Shown in pieces: positions 2,895-19,753 of a DNA stretch of 64,000 bases. Origin of the DNA: Podarcis melisellensis (Eukaryota). How positions within the stretch are numbered: the stretch's first letter is position 1; every line of letters begins with the position of its first letter. The DNA is taken from NCBI GenBank assembly GCA_964234715.1, contig OZ174275.1; one strand, given 5' to 3'. The notes beneath the pieces were generated by a model. That model ran no database searches. It saw only the letters and a list, made by a program, of their open reading frames with translations, and had not been told where the DNA came from. Both the position numbers and the translations under genes were made by a program.

Positions 2895-3087
2895 TTATTC
2901 AACTTTCAGCCCTTTGGATTTAAATTCAGAGTGCAGGATCTGTGATAAGCATCTTCCAAATTCTTCTAAGATCATTTGTTCTGCTAGGCAAATAGAGTAA
3001 GCTTCTTTTTCTGCCTCTTCAGCTTGAGCAAGAAGACAGGCACATGTTGCCTCAACCACTTCCCATGATATACATGTACTAGACTGC
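2895..3087 (-). CDS. TESMIN: TESMIN last exon coding part with TAA stop
   Basis: [63 protein letters not shown]. Confidence 0.95.
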
Positions 3088-6000
3088 CTATTGGAACAAA
3101 AAAACCAATATATACTTTTAAAATAAGTAAATGAATGAAAAAGATAAGTTACCAATTTACTCATGGCTGAACTTTTCAGGGTCTTCAAACAGGATTTTCT
3201 GTGCCGGGTACACTTTTTTTGCATTTGGCCTTCAAATATAGGAAAGGGCACAAATTTGCATATGCTTTGTCCCATATGCATTCTTATTTTTTCTTTTGCA
3301 AGTGTGTGGAGAGACTGAAATAAATAAAAGGCTACCTACAACTAATAATGTCTCAATGTCAGCAGGTGAAGTTTTCCCCAAAATTTTATTTCCTCATTAC
3401 AAAAGGCTTAATCTGTTCAATTATTGTCTATTTAACAGTGCTTCATTTCCCCCATACAACTTTCTCGTTCCAGCCACTTTTCTCTGGTTGGAATTCTGGA
3501 AGGAAAAGCAACAAGAGGGTTGAGGTGCAGGGCAGAAGCAAAAGGCAGGCGAAAGATTAAGCACTCATCCTCACCTCCCATTTCTTCACTGCAAATCATG
3601 CCCTACTCAGGCTACTTTTCAACTCTTTGGAAACAACCTAGATTCACAAAGCTACCGGCCTCTCCCATCCCAATAGCAGGATAAAGCAGCCGCCTCAGGC
3701 AGAACCACCTGAGGTGGTGCCACGACATGTGCCCCACCCACCCCACCACCTGCACCGCTAATTTCCTGTGATTCCTCACCAAAATCTCACAAGAGCTCAT
3801 GAAGCATAGCAATGGGTGCCAGTGCTGGTGGTTCCAGCAGCAGACCTAGGTTGCTGCCAAATGTGTAGGTCAGCCTTTAGACAGGCAACATACATAAACA
3901 GTAAATGAGCTGTAAAAAAAATATTCCTTATACTGTATACCAAGCATGACACTTTCATTCCCAAATAAACTACTCTGTCCATTTCAATAGGTTTTTAAAA
4001 AGCCCTGCTGCAGTGCTTCCCTTGCTGGTGCACGTCATTGGTAAATAAAAATCTGCTGTACACTGAAGTTTTTGAAGGCTTGTCTACAAGCCTGCTACCA
4101 CAATTTTAGCAAAGCTGCCAACTTGCCAGCTACACACATTCGACTGCCTGAAATTAAAGCATATGTTGCTTAAAAGGTAAAGGGACCCCTGAACATTAGG
4201 TCCAGTCGTGACCGACTCTGGGGTTGCGGCACTCATCTCACTTTATTGGCCGAGGGAGCCGGTGTACAGCTTCCGGGTCATGTGGCCAGCATGACTAAGC
4301 CGCTTCTGGCGAATTAAAGCAGTGCACGGAAATGCTGTTTACCTTCCCGCCAGAGTGGTACCTATTTATCTACTTGCACTTTGACGTGCTTTTGAACTGC
4401 TAGGTTGGCAGGAGCAGGGACCGAGCAACGGGAGCTCACCCCGTTGCAGGGATTCGAACCGCCGACCTTCTGATCGGCAAGTCCTAGGCTTTGTGGTTTA
4501 ACCCACAGCGCCACCCGCTTCAAAAACAAACACACCAAACATATATTGGTACCAAAGAGTCAGTGCTACAACCTTCACCTCAGCAGTAACCTGTGTAGCT
4601 GAAACAAGTTACTAAGCTCTGACAGAATAATCATACGTAAGATGGAGCATCTAGAAAGGAGAAAGCAAAGGTTGAGAGGAACAGACAACTAGGCTGTTGC
4701 ATATATGTTTAAAATCAGTGCTATGGCATATAAAAAAGTTTGCTATTTTAAGATACATATCTTAGATAAAAGGTGGACATCACATTGGTAATCCTTAATA
4801 TTTACCTGTCTTTTCTGCTTTTTGATAATATTTCAAAATTAGAAAATGATACAGAGTCATTTCCTTCATAACTTTTAATTTCCATATAGTTTGGTATATT
4901 CATTAGTGTTTTTCGATCTGGGCTTTCTTCATAATTTTTGCAACCAACACACTTGCAGATAGATGAACACATGATTTTAGCCTAGAAGATGCAAAATGTT
5001 CTAATTCATAAATCACTCAATACTATTAAATAATATAAGATCTGGCTCTGCTACAATACAAGGACTCAGCCATACAGCAGCAAATAAAACATTTTAAGTG
5101 CAATTTGCAACGTGACACTAGATGGCAATGGTGAGTCTTATGGAAAATTCAATGTGTTGTTTTTTTTAAAATGATTTAAAAAAAACATTTTCAGAACGTT
5201 TTTTATGTGTGTATATTCCACCTATGTATGATTCTTTGGAAGTATGCTTCCAATATCATTAGTAATTGCTACAAAGAATATAATAGTGTGATAAACTATA
5301 TTTCACTACTCCTAGCTGTATGTGGAGTTCTCTTTGAAGAATACTAAGAAATGTCATTTAGTTTAGAATATGGACCCAGACTGACTGACACTGGCTAGCA
5401 TTAAAAAAAAAAAAGCTTAATTATTTCCATAGGCACAATTCAAGTATCAAACTTGTTTCCAGAAACAATTTGAAGCACTGGGATAGACCTATAAAAGTCT
5501 TGTATGGGACTCATCCATGAATCTGCTCTTAATATCTGTCTTGGATTTGCTGCTCCTATCTTTAATACTCATGTGTATCACATTTACCTTCAGGTGCCAT
5601 AAGAAAGGACCTTTTTCTGAGTTCTCCTAAAGTTGATTTCATTGACAAATTGAATGTGCATCTTGTATTCTTTGTAAACAGCTGAGTTGTATTTACAGTT
5701 AAGAGGGATACAGATTTTGTTAAATAACTAAAAAATAAATAAGATATACTGGTACTCATCACTTCAACCATCAAAGAAGCATCTTTGGTTTCTTGTACAA
5801 CCCTCACATACTGCTTTGTAAAATATATCATACCTGCATGGCGGAATAGGAAATGCTTTCTTCATTTTGCCAGCATATTTCCATTTACCTTTCTTCTAGT
5901 GCAGATGCAAAAGACAGGGCTGTTGTACCTTTAATAATTGTGTAGATGTAGAAGAAAAGTTTCACCTGCTGTAAAGATACAAAAGCCCTGTCTTTTTTTG

Positions 6001-9000
6001 CAGGTGGCCACCCAATATTCTAGCTGCTTTTAAACTTTGAACCTGCTGCTAGAGCCTGCAGTTTTCCATGAGGAGCACACTCTATGGGAGTTTCCCCTCA
6101 GATAAAGTTTCTAAGTGCCTACAATATTACTGGATGAATCCCACCACTGTTACACATTTTTATAAAGCAGAATTAGAAAATTTCATTGAACAAACCTCAA
6201 AGCATTCACAGTAATTTTTTAGGCAACCTGACCGCTTACAATTACATCCTTTATTATGTCTGGGCTTGATATCTCCTAGTTTCCCTTTTCCAATCTTTGG
6301 CAGAAAAGCTTCTGGATTTCTGTCAAGACAAGCCTAAAACAAATATTTTTTTATTTATATAGAAGACATTCAAATTGAAAAAAAAATCATTTTTTACCTT
6401 TTTATAGCTTACTTTATTTCTAAACTATGCTTTTCTGAAGGCATATTAATTATTTTTACAGGTGGTAGCAATCAAGGAAGTTCTTGTTTATATGGTCCAC
6501 CTGTTAACACGAGACAAGATGTACTCACAGCACTGTATGTTGTCGTCTGTGGAGGCTATTCTGCTAGAGCTACTAGGATACAGTCCTTCCAATAATAATA
6601 AAAATGTCAAGCAAATCTCAAAACCACACACTCTTTCCCATCATGTACACATTAGATAGTTAAATGAACTCAGAGGCTTTGTGGGGACATTTCTAGCAAT
6701 CTTCTAGTCTTTGGCACATCAGCTCTGTGCATTGCTCAGCCAACCCTAACCTAAAAGTATGGCTATGGTAAAGAGGTCCCTTCCATGTATCTCTAGGACA
6801 TGGGTAGGCAAACTAAGGCCCAGGGGCCGGATCTGGCCCAATCGCCTTCTAAATCCGGCCTGCGGACGGTTTGGGAATCAGTGTGTTTTTACATGAGTAG
6901 AATGTGTACTTTTATTTAAAATGCATCTCTGGGTTATTTGTGGGGCATAGGAATTCATTCATTATTTTTTTCAAAATATAGTCCAGCCCCCCAAAAGGTC
7001 TGAGGAACAGTGGACCGGCCCCCTGCTGAAAAACTTTGCTAACCCCTGCTCTAGGAGGAATGCCAGCTTTTTAGCCCTTGCTGATGAGATTTCTCCTTCG
7101 TCTCTTGTTAGAAAACAGGACAGTAATTAACACAGGAGATATAATAAAAAGTAGATAATAATACTTGCATTACCTTAATTGCCTTAATCCTCTCTAGTTC
7201 ATGTTGTGGATTGTTATAACAATTATTGCAGTTGCAGTTACTGCAGAAATCACCATTGGCAAAGCAATCACAGTATCTGTGTTTAACAAAGGCAGCAGAT
7301 GAAATACATTTTATAGTTCATCATTTTCAAGGATGGTTCATGTAGTCATGTGGTTATCTGTGTATTTTATGATTTTGTTTTTCTCTGTCCCCAATATTTT
7401 GGCGTTCTGAAGATTGCAACCAATCCAGCAACCAACATTTCATGCAAGTGCTTATAATGGGAGGTTGCTGATCCCATTCTCTTTAGTTTCCCTTCTAGAT
7501 ATTTTCTGTCTCCTTTTTATTCTAAACCAGCATTGTTTATGTCTTATTTAATGCAAGTAATTAAGTAATCTTCCCATTCTGCATGTAAACATTTACATGA
7601 ACCTTTACTCAAGATACCTACTAAAGAGTGGCAGAGGAAAACGAATGAATATCAGATAAAAAAGGCTGATACATTTTCAACATGCATTTTGTATATAAAA
7701 GCAATTTTTTAAAAAAAAATACTATTACAATGTTAGAAGAAAGCAATGAACATAATGGCTCAGAACCTCTATTTTCTATATTATCTTTATATAGTACTAT
7801 GAACAACTAGAGATACACTTATTTTGTCATGGTATCTATTTTTTTGTGCTGCCTTATTTTTCAACATGCTTCCAGAAGTGTATCTTCCAGGCATTACTTT
7901 GTATGCACCAGGCTAAGCACTGTGCATAAAAAGAAGAGGAAAATGCAGCTTCAGATGTGGTAAGTTAATATCCTGTTCTATATCAAAGTCCTGTTTACTG
8001 CCATGGCTTCAGTTTAACACATATGGCAGGAATAAATTAATTACATTTGGAGTTTTTTTACACTAAGAATAGATACTTCAATATTTCGTTTACTTACAAT
8101 TTGAGGCACTGTGATTTAGTGCAGTTGCATGGCTTCTTTGACTTTGTATCCCAGGAGCTGCAAGGTAACCTAGGCATTGCAATTTTTTTTTAAAAAAAGA
8201 AGCACATTATTAGATATATAATTAAAAATTATATATTGAATGTATTGGGAAGATTATTAAAGATTACACCCATTTACTGGTGAAAAAGCGTGAAAAATGG
8301 GACTCCTAACTATGACTCCATTCACAGAACCTTGTTTTGCTACCTCAAGTCCTCCACATCACTTGCTGTAAGGGTAATGAATCTCTTGAACAAATCATCA
8401 TTCAATCTTCTGTTATACAGAGGGAAACATAATGCATCGGGTCCTAAAATAAACTGAACTTATCCTTCCTCCCCCACTGCAGCTCCCAATGGCTCTGGTG
8501 GGCTGGAGCCCCTCCTAACAAAGTAGGATGGGATGGGAGGCTTCTGGAGCAGGAAAACAACCTAGGTAGGACCTGGATATAAGTCAACAGAAGGACCATT
8601 TCCCATCACCACCTCCTCAGGATTATGCTGAATATGTTGTGCCAAGGGTTCAATGGCCAAAACAAACAAAAGAGGAGAATGTTGATAGCCTTGCTTCATC
8701 CCCAACTGTGGACTAATTTGATTAAAATCAAGATTATTTATTATCACTTTATCAAACAAATCACTATATACTTGTTATATTTTATTTATAAATTTAGGGT
8801 CAAATCTCATCATTTTGATAACACCAATTAAGTACACCTACTCCACACAATCAACAGATTTGAATATTTTAAATAGTAACACCATTAGTGGAGTGTGAGT
8901 AGTTTTACAAAAGCAAATAATATTTAACAGTTACCAATTAGATCTGAAATCTGGAGGTAACAGACAAAGCTAGCCTGACTAGGGTATAGAGCTTTTCAGT

Positions 9001-12000
9001 ATTGCAGGGATTTGTATAAATACCATGTCTTATTATTAAAGACATTAACAAATATATATATATCTATTACTGTCTTACCCAACTAAGGTCAGTTTTGTTG
9101 GCTCTTGAAGATTTTTATCTGAATGGCATGTATATATGGATCCATTATCAAGCTGCTCAAAATACAAACCAGATATTCCATTTGCATTTAGTTGTCAACT
9201 TGTTATATACATTTAAAAAACAAAAATATTATAAAAATAGATTAAATAATCAAGATAAAATATTTATAAATCACCTTCATAAATGTTAGAACAAGTCATG
9301 GAAAAGTGAAATATACTTTAGGAAAAATGGTATTTTAGGATTGATATTTGCCTTTAGCTTATACTCTTAAGTATTGACACTATTTTCATGTTGCTGACTG
9401 GGACCAGCTCCAAATTTTGGAGCACTAGTACAAGAAAAAAAGGCTACCTTGTTGCTCCTAATAATTATCACAGGAGACACAGATCTCCATCCTTGATTTT
9501 GCAATCTGCTTGTTTCCAGATCAGGTATCTTTCTCTCTCCCATATAGTCTTCTTTTTATTGTGGGTCTGTGGCACATTGTTACACATACCCTGCAGGCTT
9601 TGGATTAGTAACAGACTTTTATTCTTTAGATCTAGGGTTTGTGTATACCTAATGAATGTATTTAATGCTTGTGTATAACTGTGCTGCCTGAAGCAGCATC
9701 TATATTAGGGTTGCCATATTTCAAAAAGTGAGAATCTGGACACAAAAGTTATTTTTTGCCATTCAACCACAGTATTCCAGGTTTCTCTGGGAAATTCCGG
9801 ATGTATGGCAACCCTAACTCCGTCTCTTCATTTTTGTGAAATAGACCAATCTACTTCCTGGTATGATTAGTTAGGTATAAGGGTTAAAGCTATACACCCA
9901 TTTTTAATGGACACATGCACTCCTTTCCATGCAAAAGGCTCCAATCCCCTGAGCTGTACATTGAGGCCATGTGTGTGGTGGTAAGGCATGTGGGTTCAGA
10001 TGCATGCCTCATAACACCCCCCCAACCCTCCAGAGGAGATTTGGGGAGCACAGGGGGAAGAGAGGGGCAGAATTCCTGCTGCGCTATCAGGAATCCTTGC
10101 AACAGCTTCCACTAGCACAACAGGTTTGTTGAATATGGCCCATTCTAACAAGGCCTGCCTGTAGCAACAAAGCAGAAACATGAGACAAGACATCTAAGCA
10201 GGCAATGGTTGGGTACTAACATATGCACAATCTGCATATCTCTTGGTAGACAGAGAAAGACGCATGATATGCAGTTTGAGAATGTCAAATTAAAAACTCT
10301 TATCTGAGGGCAAAAGTAACACTTACCTCTTGTGCACAGACATTCAGTTTACCTCCAACGGGTAAAAACTGTCCCAGTACAGATGTTACAGAATTACTTG
10401 CATCTAATAAGAAAATATTTCATTTAGGTTAGTGCAATGTATAGATTTAAACAAATGCATATTTGGATAACTGACCTACATTTCAGAGGAACTAAGAGAT
10501 GTAAACAGTTACTTCTTTAGCATAAATAAAACTTAGAAATAATTAAGTTTTTAACTATGCTAAAGAAGTTTGACATTTTCTATATATTTATCTTTCCAAC
10601 CCAAACTGCATTTATTTCACACAAATATAAAAAGAATGGATCCTACAGAGGGCAAAAAAACACATAAGACGCTCCAGAAGCCCAGGATGGTGGTAGTTTA
10701 GTTGTAAAGCCATGTTCTGCATGCAAAATATACATGTTCAACTCCTGATATTTCCAAATACAAATTGGAGAGACTGCCTGAAAGGCAGGATTGCTGCTGC
10801 AATATATTGAGATACATGAACCAGTGGCTTGATGGCATAAAGCAGCTTATGTTCACTAAGTAGGAACAGCAGCAGTTTGGAGACCAAGCTTCTGAGGCTG
10901 TTTCTAAAGCATCTCCAACTAGCTGTCCCAACACATATCTTTGCACATTTCACTTTCACATGCACTTCCATGTTCATGACTATCAGGCTTCGTTTTATAT
11001 ATTTGTATAATTTTGTGCAAATCTAATCCCCTTCCCCCAGCTAAAAAAATATGTGCCCTATGCTAAGAATTGGGTCCCGCAAAGAGTGAGTTTATTTTGA
11101 AATAGTGGTTTGGAGAATAATGAAAAGGCTTGGCTTGGCTTCTTCTTCTAAAAAGCTAAAGGTGTCCTTGTGTATGGGTGTAATAGTAATTGTATGAAAA
11201 AAAATTCTGGTCTGGATGCACAGTGAACTACCATTCAGTGGGTCTTACTTCTGAGTAGACATGCATAAGATTGCACTGTTGGTCTCAGGCCCAAATTTTT
11301 AAAAAGTACTGCATTCCTGCAATTGCAGGTGGTTTGAGGAGAAATTGTCTGAGTGCAATTTAAATATGTACAATTATTAAATTTTTTACAATTAAGATTT
11401 TGAGAAGAAACCTAAGAAAAACTCCTTCTCAGATTTTACCTTTGTCATCATTCAGAGACAGTGATTGCTATATAACAATATTGTGAAAAGAATGCTTATT
11501 GAAATATTATCATTACTATATTGATCTATTAAAATTATCAGATTCCTTTATAGTTGATTGAACAGTGACATCATGTGGATGGTTTGGGTAAATGCAGACA
11601 GAACTCCCCCTTGCAAGCATACACAATTTACTAGGAGCCTTTCTACACTTAAGATAAGCCCAAGTCCTTATTTTGTTCCTAAACTGTTGAGCTCAGTCTA
11701 GACATCTCCCCTAACTGCATGTTTCTGTTATGGGAATACTGCATTTTCCCAATGTTGCGAGCATTATATTTTATAACTTAGAAAACGTGGTGCTTCCCCC
11801 AGAAAATTGCCCTATGGATTATGGATATTTGAGTTTTACATATGTCATCTGGATAATGTCTATCATGAAGCTTGCTGAAAGTATACACACAGGATCTATA
11901 TTGGCAATAAATAAAACAATGAGACAAGGCACCTGAGCATTCCATTGTTGGGTGGCAAAATTATTCAGCATATTCTGCACATCCCTTGGTGAAGTTAGTG

Positions 12001-15000
12001 AAGGGAATGTTCACAATGGCTGGATCTTTTCAATGATTCAGGTTCCCCATGTCCATACCTTTAGGTGATTATTTACATTTTATGTCCTTAGTGTTTGTCC
12101 ACTCTCTGGCTGTGCCATCAGAATACTATAATGCAGTCTCATCAGTATTATACTTGTTCCCTCAAAGTGTTCATTTCAAGCACCTTTGGATTTCTTTGTT
12201 TTTGTTCTGATCAAAGATGCTCAAGACAGTTTTCAACAGTATATAGGAATTAACAATAGTGTTTAACAAAAACATAATATATGTTGAAGTACATATATTT
12301 TACAAAAGTGGAGGAATTCAGCAAAACTACCCTGATGTGAAGACAGGATAAATATTATTGTTTCCTGATTAAAGGTGCATGAATCTGTCAATTTCAATTC
12401 CCTCAGGAATTCAGTTTGATTCTCAACATTTCCACATCAGTTTGTAATTTATTAATTTTTTGAATTCTCATGAAAATTTGTCAGCATTTTAGTGTAAATA
12501 CGCATTTTTAGATGAAATATTCCTCAAATCCACATTTTTGCTAATCAGATTTCCCTAACACAATGCATTTTCTTCTGTTATTTTCACTAATTATATATGT
12601 TGTTCATATTTTCCAAAATTTCAATACCTGTCTGAGGATACTTAGGCTGGTCTTGATACTGGGGGACCAAATGAACTGCTTTTAATTCTCTTGTGTCTGT
12701 ATTGTTTATACAAAGTATATGAGTACCACCCTTCAACTGGTAGATGATCTGAATTGCATAATCAACAAAAAAAAATATCATCAGATTAAAACCCATATCA
12801 CACTCCTTAAAATGAGCATCAAAACTTAATATACAACATAATAAAACTATGAAATTAAAAAAGCTTAAGATTTTTCTTAAAAATCAACAGTGAAGGATCC
12901 ATACATACTTCCTGCAGGAGGGCATTCAACAAATACATTTATATCATAATTGTCAGGAGATGGAGATATAGCTCTGTCATTTGTGTGGCAAGCCTCTAGT
13001 TTGTACAAAGATAAGATTAACATCCATTTCCCCACCCACCACTGGCATTTGGCCCTTGGATGGTTGTTCACTATTGAATGTGACACATGGGCTGAACAAA
13101 GTTATCCACTCCTGCTTCAGCGGAGTGCATCCCCCACCCAGAACCAGCTGCACACCACCCAGCTGAGCAGATTTCTCAGCCAACAGGACTTCCACTTTAT
13201 AATAGGAGCCAACCTGAGGGACTGAGGGGGCTTCGTCCCCCATAAAATATTTAAGGGGTGGCCCCCCAAAGTTGAGGGGTATTGCCATTCAAATGGTGTG
13301 CATGCATCATGTCACGTGATGGATTATGCGGGGTGGGGCTTACCTGCCCAATATTTTATTCAAGTTGGCACCCCTGCACTTCATCAGGTTATTTGCCTTC
13401 ATAATCCCAAAAATAACCTTCACATTCATAACTGCCACTACCTCCCTGGGATTAAGTAAAGGAAAAGAGAGGTAGAGCTGTGTGTCATCAGCGTACTAAT
13501 GCCATTAGCATACTGATTACACTGAAGTCTAAACCATCAGATGGCTTATCCCAGTAGTTTTCAACTAATGCTAAAAATCATACGGACAAGATAGAAGTTG
13601 AAGCCAGCAACCAAGGGGTAGAATAGAAGTCCCCCCCAGCAGTGCATTCTGAATCCATTATCCCAGAATGGAGCAGAAACACAACATACTGTGCCTCTAA
13701 GTCCTACCCTAGTGATTTGCTTTAGAAGGATACAAATGCCAATGGTACTGAAGTATTCCCTGGCATGTCATCCAGGGAAGTGTTCTCCATTCCAAACCTT
13801 GCCTGGAAGCCAGATTTGAAAGGACCTAAGTAACCAATGCCTAAGACAGTTGAACTATTACTGAACTTAGAGGATCTTGCTTCTGAGTAAGCTTGCTTAG
13901 GATTGTGCATTAAATAATTAAAAATGTAATATAGCAGAAACAGTTGATGAGAAAAAGAACTTGGAACAAAGCCAAGGAAATATATTGGGTGGGAAGGGTA
14001 GATTAGGTAAAGTAGATGACAGTCCATAATGCTGCTCTGAAGAAGCAACTAATCATACACATATGGGTAAAGGGACCCCTGATCATTAGGTCCAGTCGTG
14101 ACCGACTCTGGTGTTGTGGCGCTCATCTCGCTTTATTGGCCGAGGGAGCCGGCGTACAGCTTCTGGGTCATGTGGCCAGCATGACTAAACCGCTTCTGGT
14201 GAACCAGAGCAGCACACGGAAACACCGTTTACCTTCCCGCCGGAGCGGTCACTATTTATCTACTTGTACTTTGATGTGCTTTCAAAGTGCTAGGTTGGCA
14301 GGAGCTGGGAATGAGCAATGGGAGCTCACCCCGTTACAGGGATTCGAACCGCTGACCTGATCAGCAAGCCCTAGGCTCTGTGGTTTAATCCACAGTGCCA
14401 CCCACGTCCAGGCTGCTCTGAAGAAACATCTAATCATACACATATAGTCAAGACTATAAACAGAACTATAAAATGGTCATTGTTTTCTTACTGCCTACAT
14501 GGCACCACTAAGAGGAAGCTACTCTACTAAGAGCCTTGTAGTTTCATTCTAATAAAAACATAGACAACAAAAAACTATTGGCAAAGTTTTTATATCGTAA
14601 AAACACAGCAGTTACCACTTGAGGACTGGCATAATTTCTCTGTGAGCAGGTAGGTTCCTCCATTGCATTTTGTGAAGCTGCTAGGTTATGGCTGATTTCT
14701 TCACCATTTGAATTTTGAAAAACTGCTTCATCTGAATTATTAGCTGTAATGCTAACAACTGCTTCTCTGACCTCAGCCTGAAATATAATCAATTTCATAT
14801 TTTAAAGGATATGCTTACAGTATGTTGCACTGTTAAAAAGCTGGTGTTGAAAAAAATAATTGAAGTTGCTTAAATTGATCGGAAAAATTATGATCAAATT
14901 GATACATAGAATAGTCAATTAAAATTGTCATTATTACCACTATCTTTAAAAGCCCAACTTACATCTAAAGGACTAAGAAAGGATGGGGAAAAAATAACCT

Positions 15001-18000
15001 GAAATAAATACCGGTAATTACATTCCACATTGCTTTGAGTCATTTAAATAATAGTATGAATAAATTATAGAAGGTGTATCAAGTAATCAATTTTATTGGA
15101 TGCTAAGGATTCAATACAGATAGTAATTCTGTGTCTATGTCCTAAATGCATCCATGGTACTTTTTCTCTGGCATCCTGTTTCCCATAATAACTGGATGTT
15201 CAGGAGGTAGCTGTACCCAGGAGTGTCTTTGCCCAACTTTCATTCATACAATGGCTTCATCCATTTCTAGAGAAGCCGGGTCCGGCTATGCTGACCCATT
15301 CAGAACCATCAAAGCAAAGGTTGCGGGGGAGGGGGGACAGACAAAAATTTGGGGGACATCTGCCTATGCAACTCACTGTGGATCCAACTCACATTATCCT
15401 AACAAGTAGTAAAACATAGTATATACTTACAATCTCATCACAAACAGCAGCAGTATCCTGAGATGAAACAGTGATACCGTTGCATGATTCTACAACACAA
15501 AATGGAGTTGAAGAGAAAATTATGTGGACAATGTTAAATATTCAATCTAATCAGAATATTATTGTTTATATCTCACGACTGTTACAATATAACTCATAAA
15601 ACCAACAACATTTGAAGTTGAGTATAAGCAATTGAGTGTAGAATAAGAAGAGCAAGTAGAAACGGCAACCTTCCTAGGTACAATTCAAACACATTTCCCC
15701 TTACAGTGGTACCTCGGAAGTCAAATGGAATGTGTTTCAGAAGTCTGTTTGACTTCCAAAACGTTTGGAAACCAATGCACGGCTTCAGATTGGCTGCAAG
15801 AAGCTCCTGCAGCCAATCGTAAACTACAGAAGCCACATTGGACATTTGTATTCCAAAAAAACGTTTGCAAACTGGAACACTCACTTCCAGGTTTCCGGCA
15901 TTTGGGAGCCAAAACGTTCGACTTGCAAGGCATTTGGGATTCAAGGTATGACTGTATTTCAAATCCATTCAAAGGAGTTTCACTGGGGTAATTTCTTTAT
16001 AGTAAATCTTTATATGACAAAACAATCTAAATTATTTTAAAATACATTTGAAATGTAAGTTTCAAATGAATATAAATTCAAATGAAAATATGAAGTATTT
16101 GAAAATGAAACAAAACAAAAAAAAACATCCCAAGGAAAAAATGAAGGCACCACATTACACTTTGTAATGTACTGAAAAATTAAGGCTTAAAGTGAATGGC
16201 TGTTAACTTTTCAGTAAATGATGGTCAGGATGCCAATAGGATTTTCATGAGGGCACACACATATAATATTTGAATATGGTTTGTATCCTGTGCAAATTGT
16301 GTCCTGTTTTGCAGGTGGAGGGGGGGGGCAAAGATAAATCAGGGACTCCATGCAAATAAGGGGACATACTGTATGCCAACAGGTGCAAGTTTTCCCAGAA
16401 TTGTATTTCCATAGTAGAATAGGTTTAACATGGATCTCTATCCATCACATAGCTGTTAAAAGAACAAAGAACATTTCCATTTCTGAAACAGCGCTACATT
16501 CACTGCAAGTGCCTTCCATTCCTGGAAGCTTTAGAAAACAAGTTGCAACTGAAACAACTTGGATGCCAAGTGTGAAGTTTCCAACTGTAATCAATAAACA
16601 TCAAACATAGGGCAAAAAGTTACAGTTTCCTTTAATGTAATAATTGGTAAGCAAAAGGCCTCCATTTCTGATTCCTTTAAAGGAAGCTAAAAGAGCTAAA
16701 GGTAAAAATGATTTATCTTTAATAATAATAAGCAATCCAGAAAACATATTAAGTGGAAACCCATCTGCACGAAACAAAAGATGCAAACATGAAAGGATAT
16801 TTCAAAAACACTCACCACCAGAACACTCTGGTATGGCTTGTGACACTGTAGAACTATTAATAATTCCTTTGATTTGGTCACAAGAAACACAGTTCTTTGC
16901 ATCTGCAGTTGAAGTTATTGTTCTCAATACCTAGGAAAGCAAACATACTGTTCGAACTTAATATACAAAACTATTTGTGGTGTAATAATAATAAATATTT
17001 TTAAATGTTAAATTATATACACTGTAATAGTACTATAACAAATCTTATCTATATCCCATGATCGATCCTATCATGCCTCAGTCCTCCATCAGGAGGCTGA
17101 GAGGGATACACGCCCAATGCCTATGCAGAGTATGTGGCCAATTTTAAATCCCCAAATATTGTCTTGTCCAGTTTGTTCTCCTTCTTAGGATGGACCTTGC
17201 TCCTTGGGGTGGGATCACTGTTAGTGGGACAGCAGTATTGTTCCCATTCTCAGGACATGAAGAGCTAGAAATGTACCTAATTAGGACTAAAATGCATTCA
17301 TGATATATTCCACATGTATCATAATGCAATATTTCTAAGCTGCACTACATTTTCATTAAATGATGCTGAATTTTTATCTAAAGCAACTAAAATGCAATGA
17401 TTACTTCAAAGCACATATATTATGATTCAGGTATTTTTAAAAAGCAGTCTTACTGGTATCATTTCTACATTTGTATTGACTGCTCCATCAGCAGTACTGG
17501 TGCCAAGAGATAGCATGGAACCTCTATGTTCTGTCATTAAGGAAGATGGAAAATGGATGTTCTGTGAGCCCAGTTGCAATTTTGGTAAATATGCACATGT
17601 TGTCACTTCTGAAAGAGTCGCTTCTGGTAATTTCTGATATTTTCCAAGGACTTCATCACAAAACTCTTGTGTACATGGCTGCATTTTAACTTCCAACATT
17701 GCATGTTCATTTTCTCTATTCAGAGCATGTTTCCCGCGATTCAGTGCAGCTTCAGCCATAGAACTTAAATAGGTGTCTTGACTGGAATAGAATTCTTCTT
17801 CAACTGGTTTATTAATTAAATCATTCTTTGGACTAAGAATTTCGGAATTAAAGGTCTTCACAAGTCCATTGTCTATTCTTGAAATTCTACTAAAGGTTAT
17901 ATGACTTTCCATAGGTACAGTTAAACTTTCAGATTGGTAGTATTTGATCTCTGTAGAGACATCTATTTGTCCTGGGCCAATTTTCATCTCGGTAGCTGTT

Positions 18001-19372
18001 TCAGCTTCAAAATAAACAAACAAAAATAAGCAACAAATCATATCCAACATAAGTCTCCAATCCTAAGCATATGCTCACTGATCACTTACATATTGGATGG
18101 TGTATACACAAGATCTCACTCTTGCACTCTGCAAATCCACACTACAAACTCACCCTTGGTTTTACAGATAGTAACTAACATGGATTAGAATTCCCAACTG
18201 AAATGTAAAGTTTCAATGGCTTAATGGAGAATCATTCACTTGTGTTTTCACTTTTAACCACCTTCTACGGGGTACTGGTTAAATTCAAATGCCAATTTGC
18301 TTTAACTGATCTTAATTATATTTTCTTCAGTAGTACTGCTGTGCATGTCTGATCTTCAAACATATAAACACTATCAACAGCAATCAATATAGAGTTGCAA
18401 CTTTTTCTATGCATTTGAAGTGCTTAAATTGTTTTTTATTAGACCACTGTTACTTGAACATGAATTATCTATTTGCCTTAGCCATACCTGAAACTTTTCC
18501 ATTGTTTGTGACAGAAACTTCTATGTATTATGAGAAAGTACATATTCTTACACTAGTATGAACTTGTCTTTTAAACATCACCATATGTAGTTTGGGAAAT
18601 GATTTCCCAATTACTATTACTATACTCAGAATAAATGTACCTTTTAATATTTCCACATTCAGTACTCGAACATATAAAGTTTTGAGATACAGTTCCAAAT
18701 AAGAAACAGACCCTATTGTTGGCAGACTAGATGCAAGATGCTAATATACATTATAAAGAAATAACAAAAAGTACATCTGAGGGGCATAAATGTGTTTTGT
18801 TTTTGTAAACTATTATACGGCCCTTCCAAAAATTTCAGATCAAACTTTTGCAACTGTGCCACTTCGAAATAGTATGTTTGCATCTGGATAACCCTGTCCT
18901 ATGATCTCCCATTTGCCTACCTGAAACAAAGGAGCTTTTTTTTAAGTATGTGTTGTGGTGGTTACCTCACACATTACAGATTAAGGGTATATTTACTTGT
19001 ATCTAAAGCAATTACACACCTCTACTTCACCTGAAGCAACAGTGCAATATAGATCTGTGTTGCTGCTTTGGATGCACCTCTATATTGTGTATGGTGCATA
19101 TCAGGGGTGGCTAACCTGGAGCCTTCCAAGTCTTATTGAATTAGAATTCACCTCATCCCTGGCTCTTAAACTTTGCTGTCTGGGGCTGATGGGAGTTGTT
19201 ACTCAACAACAAATGGAAGACCACAGGTTCCCCTGTACTGATGCACACACACACACTTTATTGGCCCAGCATGAAGATGTTCAGAGTTTCATGGTGTCTC
19301 CTTTTCACCAGGAGTGGGTGAAAAACCTGCCTGCCCAGAGTGGCTGGGGCAACCCAGTCAGATGGGTGGCAA

Positions 19373-19422
<50 letters not shown>

Positions 19423-19753
19423 GCCCTGACACGAATGACAACACTGGCCAGGGGTGGCTTCCATGTAGAGATGGTGGAATATGGGGTGCTTCACACTTTG
19501 CAGGTCTGACACCCCCGTGTGTGGTACACAACTAGTTCACAAAGACTTGTCGTTCATCCTTGGCACGTCTGCTTATTGTAAACACCAGTGTCCCAGGCTT
19601 GGGACGAACTTGATGGCAACCACATACAAGGTGAAGAAGCAGCCCTCACGCAGGCGGCGGACATTCTTTTAAACCGTGGTGGCTGAAGCGGGCCAGCCAC
19701 CCCGCCACCTCACCTTCCCCCTCCGCAGATTCCCGCCTTTTCCCCTCCATCAT
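2895..19753 (-). CDS. TESMIN: Tesmin (testis-expressed metallothionein-like, MTL5), CRC/CXC-domain protein, 13 coding exons, about 626 aa
   Basis: CXC motifs [18 protein letters not shown] and [19 protein letters not shown]; C-terminus [16 protein letters not shown]...FKSKGLKVE; synteny with CPT1A. Exon sizes 40,551,115,59,162,121,77,74,72,103,138,176,193 sum to 1881 nt in frame. Confidence 0.93.
4172..4518 (-). mobile_element. Sauria SINE (lacertid type), near full length
   Basis: tRNA-related head (GGTGGCGCTGTGGG...GGTTCGAATCCC) and Bov-B-related tail ending CCTTTACCTTT on the minus strand. Confidence 0.9.
4806..4981 (-). CDS. TESMIN: TESMIN penultimate exon
   Basis: [35 protein letters not shown]...KSRKDR; 176 nt. 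Confidence 0.95.
6196..6333 (-). CDS. TESMIN: TESMIN exon (RNPEAF hinge plus CXC2)
   Basis: [46 protein letters not shown]; 138 nt. Confidence 0.95.
6799..7048. mobile_element. hAT (Charlie-like) MITE
   Basis: TIRs CATGGGTAGGCAAA / TTTGCTAACCCCTG with a perfect 8-bp TSD CTCTAGGA. Confidence 0.85.
7174..7276 (-). CDS. TESMIN: TESMIN exon (CXC1 C-terminal half)
   Basis: [34 protein letters not shown]; 103 nt. Confidence 0.95.
8098..8169 (-). CDS. TESMIN: TESMIN 72-nt exon encoding the N-terminal half of CXC1
   Basis: (G)[23 protein letters not shown](L); phase 2 to 2; CCTAG acceptor, GTAAGT donor. Confidence 0.9.
8620..8760 (-). mobile_element. Degenerate L1-like ORF2 reverse-transcriptase fragment
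   Basis: [24 protein letters not shown] resembles the RT motif GxRQGCPLSPLLFxLAIEPLA. Confidence 0.75.
9079..9152 (-). CDS. TESMIN: TESMIN exon
   Basis: [24 protein letters not shown](G), similar to mammalian ...GPPKITLAG; 74 nt. Confidence 0.88.
9706..9816. mobile_element. hAT-like MITE
   Basis: TIRs TAGGGTTGCCATA / TATGGCAACCCTA. Confidence 0.7.
10327..10403 (-). CDS. TESMIN: TESMIN exon
   Basis: (D)[25 protein letters not shown]; 77 nt; donor GTAAGT. Confidence 0.9.
12628..12748 (-). CDS. TESMIN: TESMIN exon
   Basis: [40 protein letters not shown]; 121 nt. Confidence 0.93.
13201..13376. mobile_element. hAT-like MITE
   Basis: GCCAAC / GTTGGC subterminal inverted repeat; 8-bp TSD CACTTTAT / CACTTCAT. 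Confidence 0.7.
14066..14409 (-). mobile_element. Sauria SINE, full length, with 34-bp target-site duplication
   Basis: Highly similar to the 4172-4518 copy; flanking direct repeats at 14031-14064 and 14412-14445. Confidence 0.9.
14616..14777 (-). CDS. TESMIN: TESMIN exon
   Basis: [22 protein letters not shown]...YASPQV, similar to mammalian VEIKEAGG...NNPEEATLQN; 162 nt. Confidence 0.9.
15431..15489 (-). CDS. TESMIN: TESMIN extra exon B (59 nt, phase 1 to 0)
   Basis: TTGTAG|(E)[19 protein letters not shown]|GTAAGT; restores frame together with exon A. Confidence 0.65.
15704..15954. mobile_element. Tc1/mariner (pogo/Tigger-like) MITE
   Basis: TA|CAGTGGTACCTC ... AAGGTATGACTG|TA termini. 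Confidence 0.8.
16816..16930 (-). CDS. TESMIN: TESMIN extra exon A (115 nt, phase 0 to 1)
   Basis: TTTCCTAG|[38 protein letters not shown]+G|GTGAGT; frame is open. Confidence 0.65.
17454..18004 (-). CDS. TESMIN: TESMIN exon 2 (large, low-conservation N-terminal exon)
   Basis: Open frame ending in EMIP|GTAAGA, like the mammalian exon ending RMIP; acceptor TTTTGAAG. Confidence 0.85.
19373..19421. repeat. (ATT)n microsatellite
   Basis: About 16 tandem ATT units. Confidence 0.95.

Follow-up and report, generated by a model that had tools for sequence, protein, structure and literature searches.

An ancestral 72-nt exon of TESMIN that completes its first CXC module, and its skipping in mammals and loss in two muroid rodents

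The TESMIN locus of Podarcis melisellensis

The window analysed here is a stretch of 64,000 nucleotides from contig OZ174275.1 of the lizard Podarcis melisellensis (assembly GCA_964234715.1), which carries the TESMIN (MTL5) gene on the minus strand. The exon of interest is 72 nt long (8098..8169; 24 residues) and corresponds to coding exon 9 of 13 in the gene model of Podarcis muralis. Its 3' splice site AG (8170..8171) is positionally homologous to the acceptor of mammals and the gecko, and its 5' splice site GTAAGT (8092..8097) is the same in lizard, gecko and six mammals. The upstream coding exon (9079..9152) ends in KLTLVG and two bases (GG) of a split glycine codon, the 72-nt exon is translated into 23 residues plus two bases (TT) of a split leucine codon, and the next exon (7174..7276) opens with one base followed by TAC TGT GAT TGC, read as YCDCF. 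Both flanking introns are in phase 2 and the exon length is divisible by three. Since the exon is symmetric (phase 2/2), skipping would preserve the reading frame and create the junction KLTLVG-YCDCF. The AG acceptor, the GTAAGT donor and the split codons bear out the original prediction of a phase-2/phase-2 exon of 72 nt.

The remaining exons mentioned here lie on the minus strand as well. The 7174..7276 exon encodes the rest of the first CXC module (CXC1), including the minor-groove tyrosine and six cysteines, together with the start of the C-terminal helix of CXC1. It is followed by the exon at 6196..6333, which carries the RNPEAF hinge (6304-6321) and the first half of CXC2 with its tyrosine. 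In exon-wise searches, the exon at 4805..4981 proved to carry the remaining half of CXC2 and then a tail specific to TESMIN. In mouse MTL5, LIN9 is bound by a C-terminal tail (PMC8386835), and the last coding exon here (2898..3092) matches this tail. Mapping of the P. muralis protein also located a large coding exon for the N-terminal part at 17451..18008.

The best match of the 4805-4981 exon in a full-database HMMER search was the 626-residue tesmin isoform X1 of P. muralis (P0001), and its top matches were tesmins of Podarcis, Alligator and birds. LIN54 aligned only to the first 38 or so residues of this exon, while the tail after CXC2 is of the TESMIN type. The window exons were searched singly, and P0001 was used as a stand-in for the full-length protein. 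P0001 mapped onto the window as 13 coding exons at about 91% identity, with the same borders for the 72-nt exon; this exon-by-exon agreement identifies the locus as TESMIN of another lacertid. Moreover, a carnitine acyltransferase gene (Carn_acyltransf exons) was found upstream of TESMIN on the same strand, and in the mammalian gene order TESMIN adjoins CPT1A. The match to P. muralis tesmin and the exon-wise mapping uphold the assignment of the gene to TESMIN. TESMIN (MTL5) is the germline paralogue of LIN54, a subunit of MuvB, and the 72-nt stretch is one of the ordinary, ancestral coding exons of this gene.

Completion of the first CXC module

In human LIN54, DBD-N contacts the DNA backbone through N526, T528, K529, S530, K534, and L535, and Y536 enters the minor groove (PMC4974476). 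R574 is also among the contact residues, and high-affinity binding requires both CXC modules (PMC4974476). The lizard exon was found to align one-for-one with LIN54 residues 523-535, with all of the listed contact residues identical. It encodes three of the nine CXC1 cysteines (zinc ligands), the N-x-T-K-S loop that meets the DNA backbone, and the K-L which precedes the minor-groove tyrosine. The codon for the Y536 equivalent itself comes first in the next exon, which also supplies the six other cysteines, and CXC2 is made up of the following two exons. These four CXC exons are gaplessly collinear with the LIN54 DNA-binding domain (5fd3_A), covering chain residues 8-23 (the 72-nt exon), 25-58, 59-104, and 105-133, respectively. 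With the exon included, lizard TESMIN contains two tandem nine-cysteine CXC modules, and the minor-groove tyrosine is present in each (CLK-L-Y-C and CLKNYC, equivalent to Y536 and Y610 of LIN54). In an alignment of exon-containing TESMIN and LIN54 sequences, the nine CXC1 cysteines are invariant in 110 out of 110.

When the exons were searched one at a time with the Pfam TCR family (PF03638; cut-off 23.5 bits), scores of 23.8 bits for 7174-7276 and 31.5 bits for 6196-6333 were obtained. The two half-module exons reached 14.6 and 17.3 bits, below the threshold as expected for pieces, and the 72-nt exon covers positions 1-13 of the family. The original prediction had held that the exon completes CXC1 and that hinge, CXC2 and both tyrosines are intact. 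The first part is confirmed by the collinearity with 5fd3_A and by the three cysteines and contact loop that the exon supplies; the second was recovered in the downstream exons.

AlphaFold models of two database orthologues, both zinc-free, unequal in alignment depth and truncated ahead of the residues that correspond to 4911-4948, were also compared. DBD-N with the exon (P. muralis P0001) had a mean pLDDT of 68 and matched 5fd3_A in Foldseek (E = 5.4e-6). For the model without the exon (Pogona X2, P0343) the mean pLDDT was 52, and the shared exon-B residues went from 72-84 to 53-65. A weakened fold in the model of the skipped form is only suggested by this comparison. Judged by sequence, lizard TESMIN that includes the exon has all the features of a LIN54-type DNA reader, as well as a conserved tail of the LIN9-binding type.

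The exon across vertebrates

Squamate, turtle, crocodilian, and bird TESMINs carry the 24-residue block, as do those of a frog, coelacanth, ray-finned fishes, and a shark, and non-mammalian vertebrates normally include the exon. Among lacertids, all 12 gene models from five species contain it and none skips it. In the lacertid of the window, the gene models of related species suggest that the exon is included by default. Skipped RefSeq isoforms were found in two non-lacertid lizards (Pogona X2, Hemicordylus X3/X4), a partial Naja model skips the exon, and skipped models were also found in two turtles and the emu.

In mammals, the picture is a mixed one. Most of the 104 mammalian models show the junction KITLAG-YCDCF and lack the KPCNC segment. 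Tesmins of rodents, bats, hedgehog, and aardvark have this junction, and both the two human models in the match list and the mouse-type protein of 475 residues are the skipped form. The CRC domain of the mouse-type protein is annotated from residue 263 (PMC8386835). The mammalian junction that the original prediction had given is therefore real, occurring in dozens of models. A uniformly complete CXC1 in mammalian TESMIN is ruled out by the rodent, bat, hedgehog, and aardvark junctions.

Exon-including models were found in at least 17 mammalian species, and in these the 24-residue insert sits exactly at the KITLAG-YCDCF junction. They span echidna, Tasmanian devil, brushtail possum, dog, cats, mustelids, dolphins, and ruminants, as well as rabbit, tree shrew, naked mole-rat, and pocket gopher, and a lemur isoform contains the exon too. 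No anthropoid model with the exon occurs among the 913 candidates, from which nothing certain follows for anthropoid genomes. RefSeq isoform pairs that differ by exactly 24 residues were found in dogs, cats, mustelids, dolphins, deer, a marsupial, and two non-lacertid lizards. Examples, with and without the exon, are Panthera onca (531 and 507 residues), Mustela erminea (572 and 548), Orcinus orca (540 and 516), Sminthopsis (567 and 543), and the lizards Hemicordylus (702 and 678) and Pogona (620 and 596); these models are predictions, and some of the skipped ones, such as GenBank submitter annotations, may be projected from mammalian references. Both isoforms are thus already in public annotation. 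In addition, the skipped form is encoded by pig contigs of no more than 2.2 kb, which are too short for a genomic origin and hence must derive from spliced RNA.

At the DNA level, the TESMIN locus was compared between eight non-primate mammals and a gecko. The exon, its AG and its GTAAGT are intact in Tachyglossus, Sarcophilus, Panthera, and Thomomys, and also in Ctenodactylus and Elephas, although the annotated proteins of the latter two skip it. The exon-including mammalian isoforms (Panthera onca X1, Mustela erminea X1, Sarcophilus X1, Tachyglossus) use the same 72-nt exon in the same phase and share 19 of the 24 encoded residues with the lizard. The reference mammalian protein is therefore an exon-skipped form and not the product of exon loss.

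Of the genomes compared, only those of the two muroid rodents, Mastomys and Microtus, have truly lost the exon. In Mastomys a remnant survives (84% identity, E = 5e-28), in which the acceptor AG and the donor GT are gone and two 1-nt deletions and an in-frame stop are present. In Microtus no remnant was detectable in the 1.7-kb intron, the runs of N at this locus lying elsewhere. A search of mammalian introns for a decayed exon had been proposed with the original prediction; such a remnant exists in Mastomys, whereas the exon is intact in six other mammals. Compared to lizard TESMIN, muroid proteins lack the 24 exon residues and four further CXC1 residues, including two cysteines. Single CXC1 ligands have been lost in golden mole, a free-tailed bat, New World monkeys, and a mole-rat. 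In regular isoforms the CXC2 ligands are unsubstituted; the sole exception, a Myotis model (P0234), is doubtful.

Conservation of the exon in mammals

The nucleotide sequence of the exon was compared between six mammals comprising monotremes, marsupials, and placentals (Tachyglossus, Sarcophilus, Elephas, Panthera, Ctenodactylus, and Thomomys). Three of its 72 sites are variable, and none of these is among its 23 third positions. The next exon (103 nt) is variable at 36 sites, including 23 of 34 third positions, and the following exon (138 nt) at 50 sites, including 35 of 46 third positions. The difference between no variable third position out of 23 and 58 out of 80 in the two neighbors combined is highly significant (Fisher p = 8e-11). 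Flanks of 100 nt are 66-84% identical between mammals around the 72-nt exon, as opposed to 48-64% around the neighboring exons. About 150 nt of flanking intron are conserved, with invariant columns from approximately -100 to +60. Such a pattern is typical of regulated alternative exons, and the invariant third positions and conserved flanks together form the signature of a regulated cassette exon in mammals. By this measure, the mammalian exon qualifies as an ultraconserved cassette exon.

A different pattern was seen in lizards. Between a gecko and the window lizard the exon has 9 differences, and 7 of its 23 third positions differ. In this comparison, which involved one gecko, the exon and its flanks showed no conservation beyond that of neighboring exons, and the gecko-lacertid split is estimated to be about as deep as that of the mammalian sample. 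From this, regulated skipping may be a feature of mammals. In short, mammals combine an almost invariant exon and flanks with paired skipped isoforms, whereas in lacertids synonymous sites drift normally and no skipped model is found.

Proposed role of exon inclusion

Inclusion of the exon gives the lizard protein both CXC modules in full, the hinge, and a C-terminal tail whose mouse counterpart docks on LIN9. When it is skipped, three zinc ligands and the DNA-contact loop are gone, while the frame, CXC2 and the MuvB-docking tail are kept. Within a germline MYB-MuvB complex, TESMIN with the exon most likely plays the part of a CHR-binding, LIN54-like subunit, and the skipped form is expected to bind CHR DNA (TTYRAA) poorly or not at all. 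Inclusion of the exon might then decide whether TESMIN-MuvB reads DNA via TESMIN itself. Skipping as a frame-preserving switch of DNA binding, as put forward in the original prediction, is plausible in view of the isoform pairs and the nucleotide conservation in mammals. Taken together, we consider it probable that an ancestral exon completes CXC1, is a cassette in mammals and was lost in the two muroids checked, with CHR binding, default inclusion in lacertids and a DNA-reading switch as the inferred parts of this explanation.

A broader version of this proposal is offered tentatively, and we lean slightly against it. Here most mammals would toggle between a TESMIN that reads CHR elements and a CXC1-blind form that still docks on MuvB, and lizards would produce the complete protein by default. 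The muroid loss would then mean that all functional studies, which were carried out in mouse, saw a crippled form.

The original prediction had instead supposed that the mammalian lineage lost the exon and that a complete tandem CXC domain is confined to reptile-type TESMIN. This would account for the KITLAG-YCDCF junction in most of the mammalian models listed and for the CRC domain of the 475-residue protein beginning at residue 263, and muroid genomes really are without a functional exon. However, six genomes, drawn from all three mammalian subclasses, carry an intact exon with intact splice sites, and at least 17 mammalian species and a lemur isoform have it in their models. Loss in mammals as a group is rejected by these intact genomic exons, the supposition survives for muroid rodents only, and as a general account it is now extremely improbable. 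A skeptical reader could also regard the skipped forms as functionless splicing noise or annotation artefacts and ascribe the conservation to an overlapping element such as an enhancer or non-coding RNA rather than to splicing control. Indeed, submitter annotations, possibly copied from mammalian references, are the source of some skipped models, and the mammalian splice sites look strong, which is unusual for an exon that is often skipped. Nevertheless, the skipped form is that of the cloned mouse cDNA and the form named in human models, and it is also present on transcript-sized pig contigs. The conservation is centered on the exon and its splice signals; over the conserved block, no match to Rfam was found and the predicted RNA fold is unremarkable (z-scores +0.26 and -1.19). 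We therefore judge this account to be quite unlikely, though less so than loss throughout mammals.

The mammalian cassette could also have a counterpart in the window lizard, where the exon would be a regulated switch, for example with stage-specific skipping in spermatogenesis, rather than simply constitutive. The symmetry of the exon would permit this, and skipping appears in RefSeq isoforms of two other squamate families (Pogona, Hemicordylus), in the partial Naja model, and in models of two turtles and the emu. On the other hand, inclusion in 12 of 12 models from five lacertid species and the ordinary conservation between gecko and lacertid argue for constitutive use. Regulation in this lizard is therefore a real possibility but an unlikely one. 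The preferred explanation thus remains that of an ancestral exon which completes CXC1, is included by default in lacertids, and serves as a cassette in mammals.

The findings bear on how the mouse protein should be viewed. The first module of mouse-type TESMIN lacks five of nine zinc ligands along with the loop that contacts DNA, and most other mammals have a near-invariant optional exon that restores three of the five ligands and the loop. Mouse may therefore be an atypical model for TESMIN. This raises the question of whether the germline MuvB complex reads DNA through TESMIN and whether splicing controls it.

Relation to known systems

In the literature covered, which was partial, no paper describing the exon, the truncation or the cassette was found, nor any report of DNA binding by a TESMIN. 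The closest structural reference is human LIN54 (PDB 5FD3; Marceau et al. 2016, PMC4974476), which shares with lizard TESMIN the two nine-cysteine modules, the RNPEAF-type hinge, and both tyrosines. LIN54 is, however, a paralogue encoded by a different gene, and the lizard tail after CXC2 is that of TESMIN.

Mouse TESMIN/MTL5 (475 residues) is the orthologue, and the two share a conserved CXC2, the hinge and, at the C-terminus, the LIN9-binding tail. In mouse, male meiosis requires the protein, whose partners are MYBL1 and a MuvB core free of LIN54 (PMC7124961, PMC8386835, PMC9789103). The mouse protein has been described as having a LIN54-type DNA-binding domain, and was proposed to replace LIN54 and steer MuvB to meiotic promoters (PMC8386835). 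Moreover, this protein, which lacks the exon, rescues the knockout (PMC7124961, PMC9789103). Since it also carries the further four-residue deletion in CXC1, the essential function in mouse is independent of a complete CXC1.

A parallel exists in Drosophila, where tombola of the tMAC complex, a testis paralogue of Mip120/LIN54, is likewise a germline CXC paralogue that takes the place of the somatic one in a MuvB-like complex. The likeness, as described in the literature, is one of outline, and tombola arose by an independent duplication.

A Second Possible Acceptor in the 72-nt Exon and Repeat-Like Sequence Elsewhere in the Gene

The 72-nt TESMIN exon (window 8098-8169, minus strand), which encodes the first third of the first cysteine module (CXC1), contains an internal TGCAG at 8158-8162 on the same strand. 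It is formed by Cys-Ser codons and follows a short run of pyrimidines. Splicing to this site would shorten the exon to 60 nt, keep the frame and drop the four residues LPCS; in all orthologous TESMIN models the acceptor is the upstream AG and not this site. An open frame at about 8565-8774 (minus strand), in the intron that precedes the 72-nt exon, resembles a reverse-transcriptase fragment of a putative retroelement. A long trinucleotide microsatellite of the ATT/AAT type was found at about 19361-19531, near a GC-richer region that holds the putative promoter and the first exon of TESMIN, and it appears as poly-Ile/poly-Asn in ORF lists.

Related Domains in Database Proteins

Several ray-finned-fish proteins with a TESMIN-type CRC domain, from teleosts, bowfin, and sturgeon, carry the RefSeq name "spexin prohormone 2" (database proteins P0090, P0122, P0312, P0313, P0316, P0319, and P0321). 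This label is probably a naming error or the result of merging with a neighboring gene. In two models named LIN54, P0030 (Xiphophorus) and P0077, CXC1 begins at YCDCF and the KPCNC segment is absent. There too, the LIN54 exon homologous to the 72-nt TESMIN exon may have been skipped or missed.

Further Changes to the Domain in Mammals

A 138-nt exon (phase 0/0), which codes for the hinge together with the first half of CXC2, is skipped in several mammalian TESMIN models (P0197, P0210, P0212, P0216, P0228, P0233, and P0235). In these models, its skipping is a second route to a crippled domain with the frame kept. Muroid rodents have in common a 12-nt deletion in the exon that follows the lost 72-nt exon (locus L004, about 14488-14577; locus L001, 9599-9691; proteins P0156-P0169), which takes out two further CXC1 cysteines. 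Placental TESMIN has Cys in CXC1 at the position of LIN54 Tyr555 (NCCNN vs. NCYNN); Tyr is retained there in marsupial, echidna, and nearly all sauropsid TESMIN. In LIN54, Tyr555 packs against the helix of its subdomain (PMC4974476).
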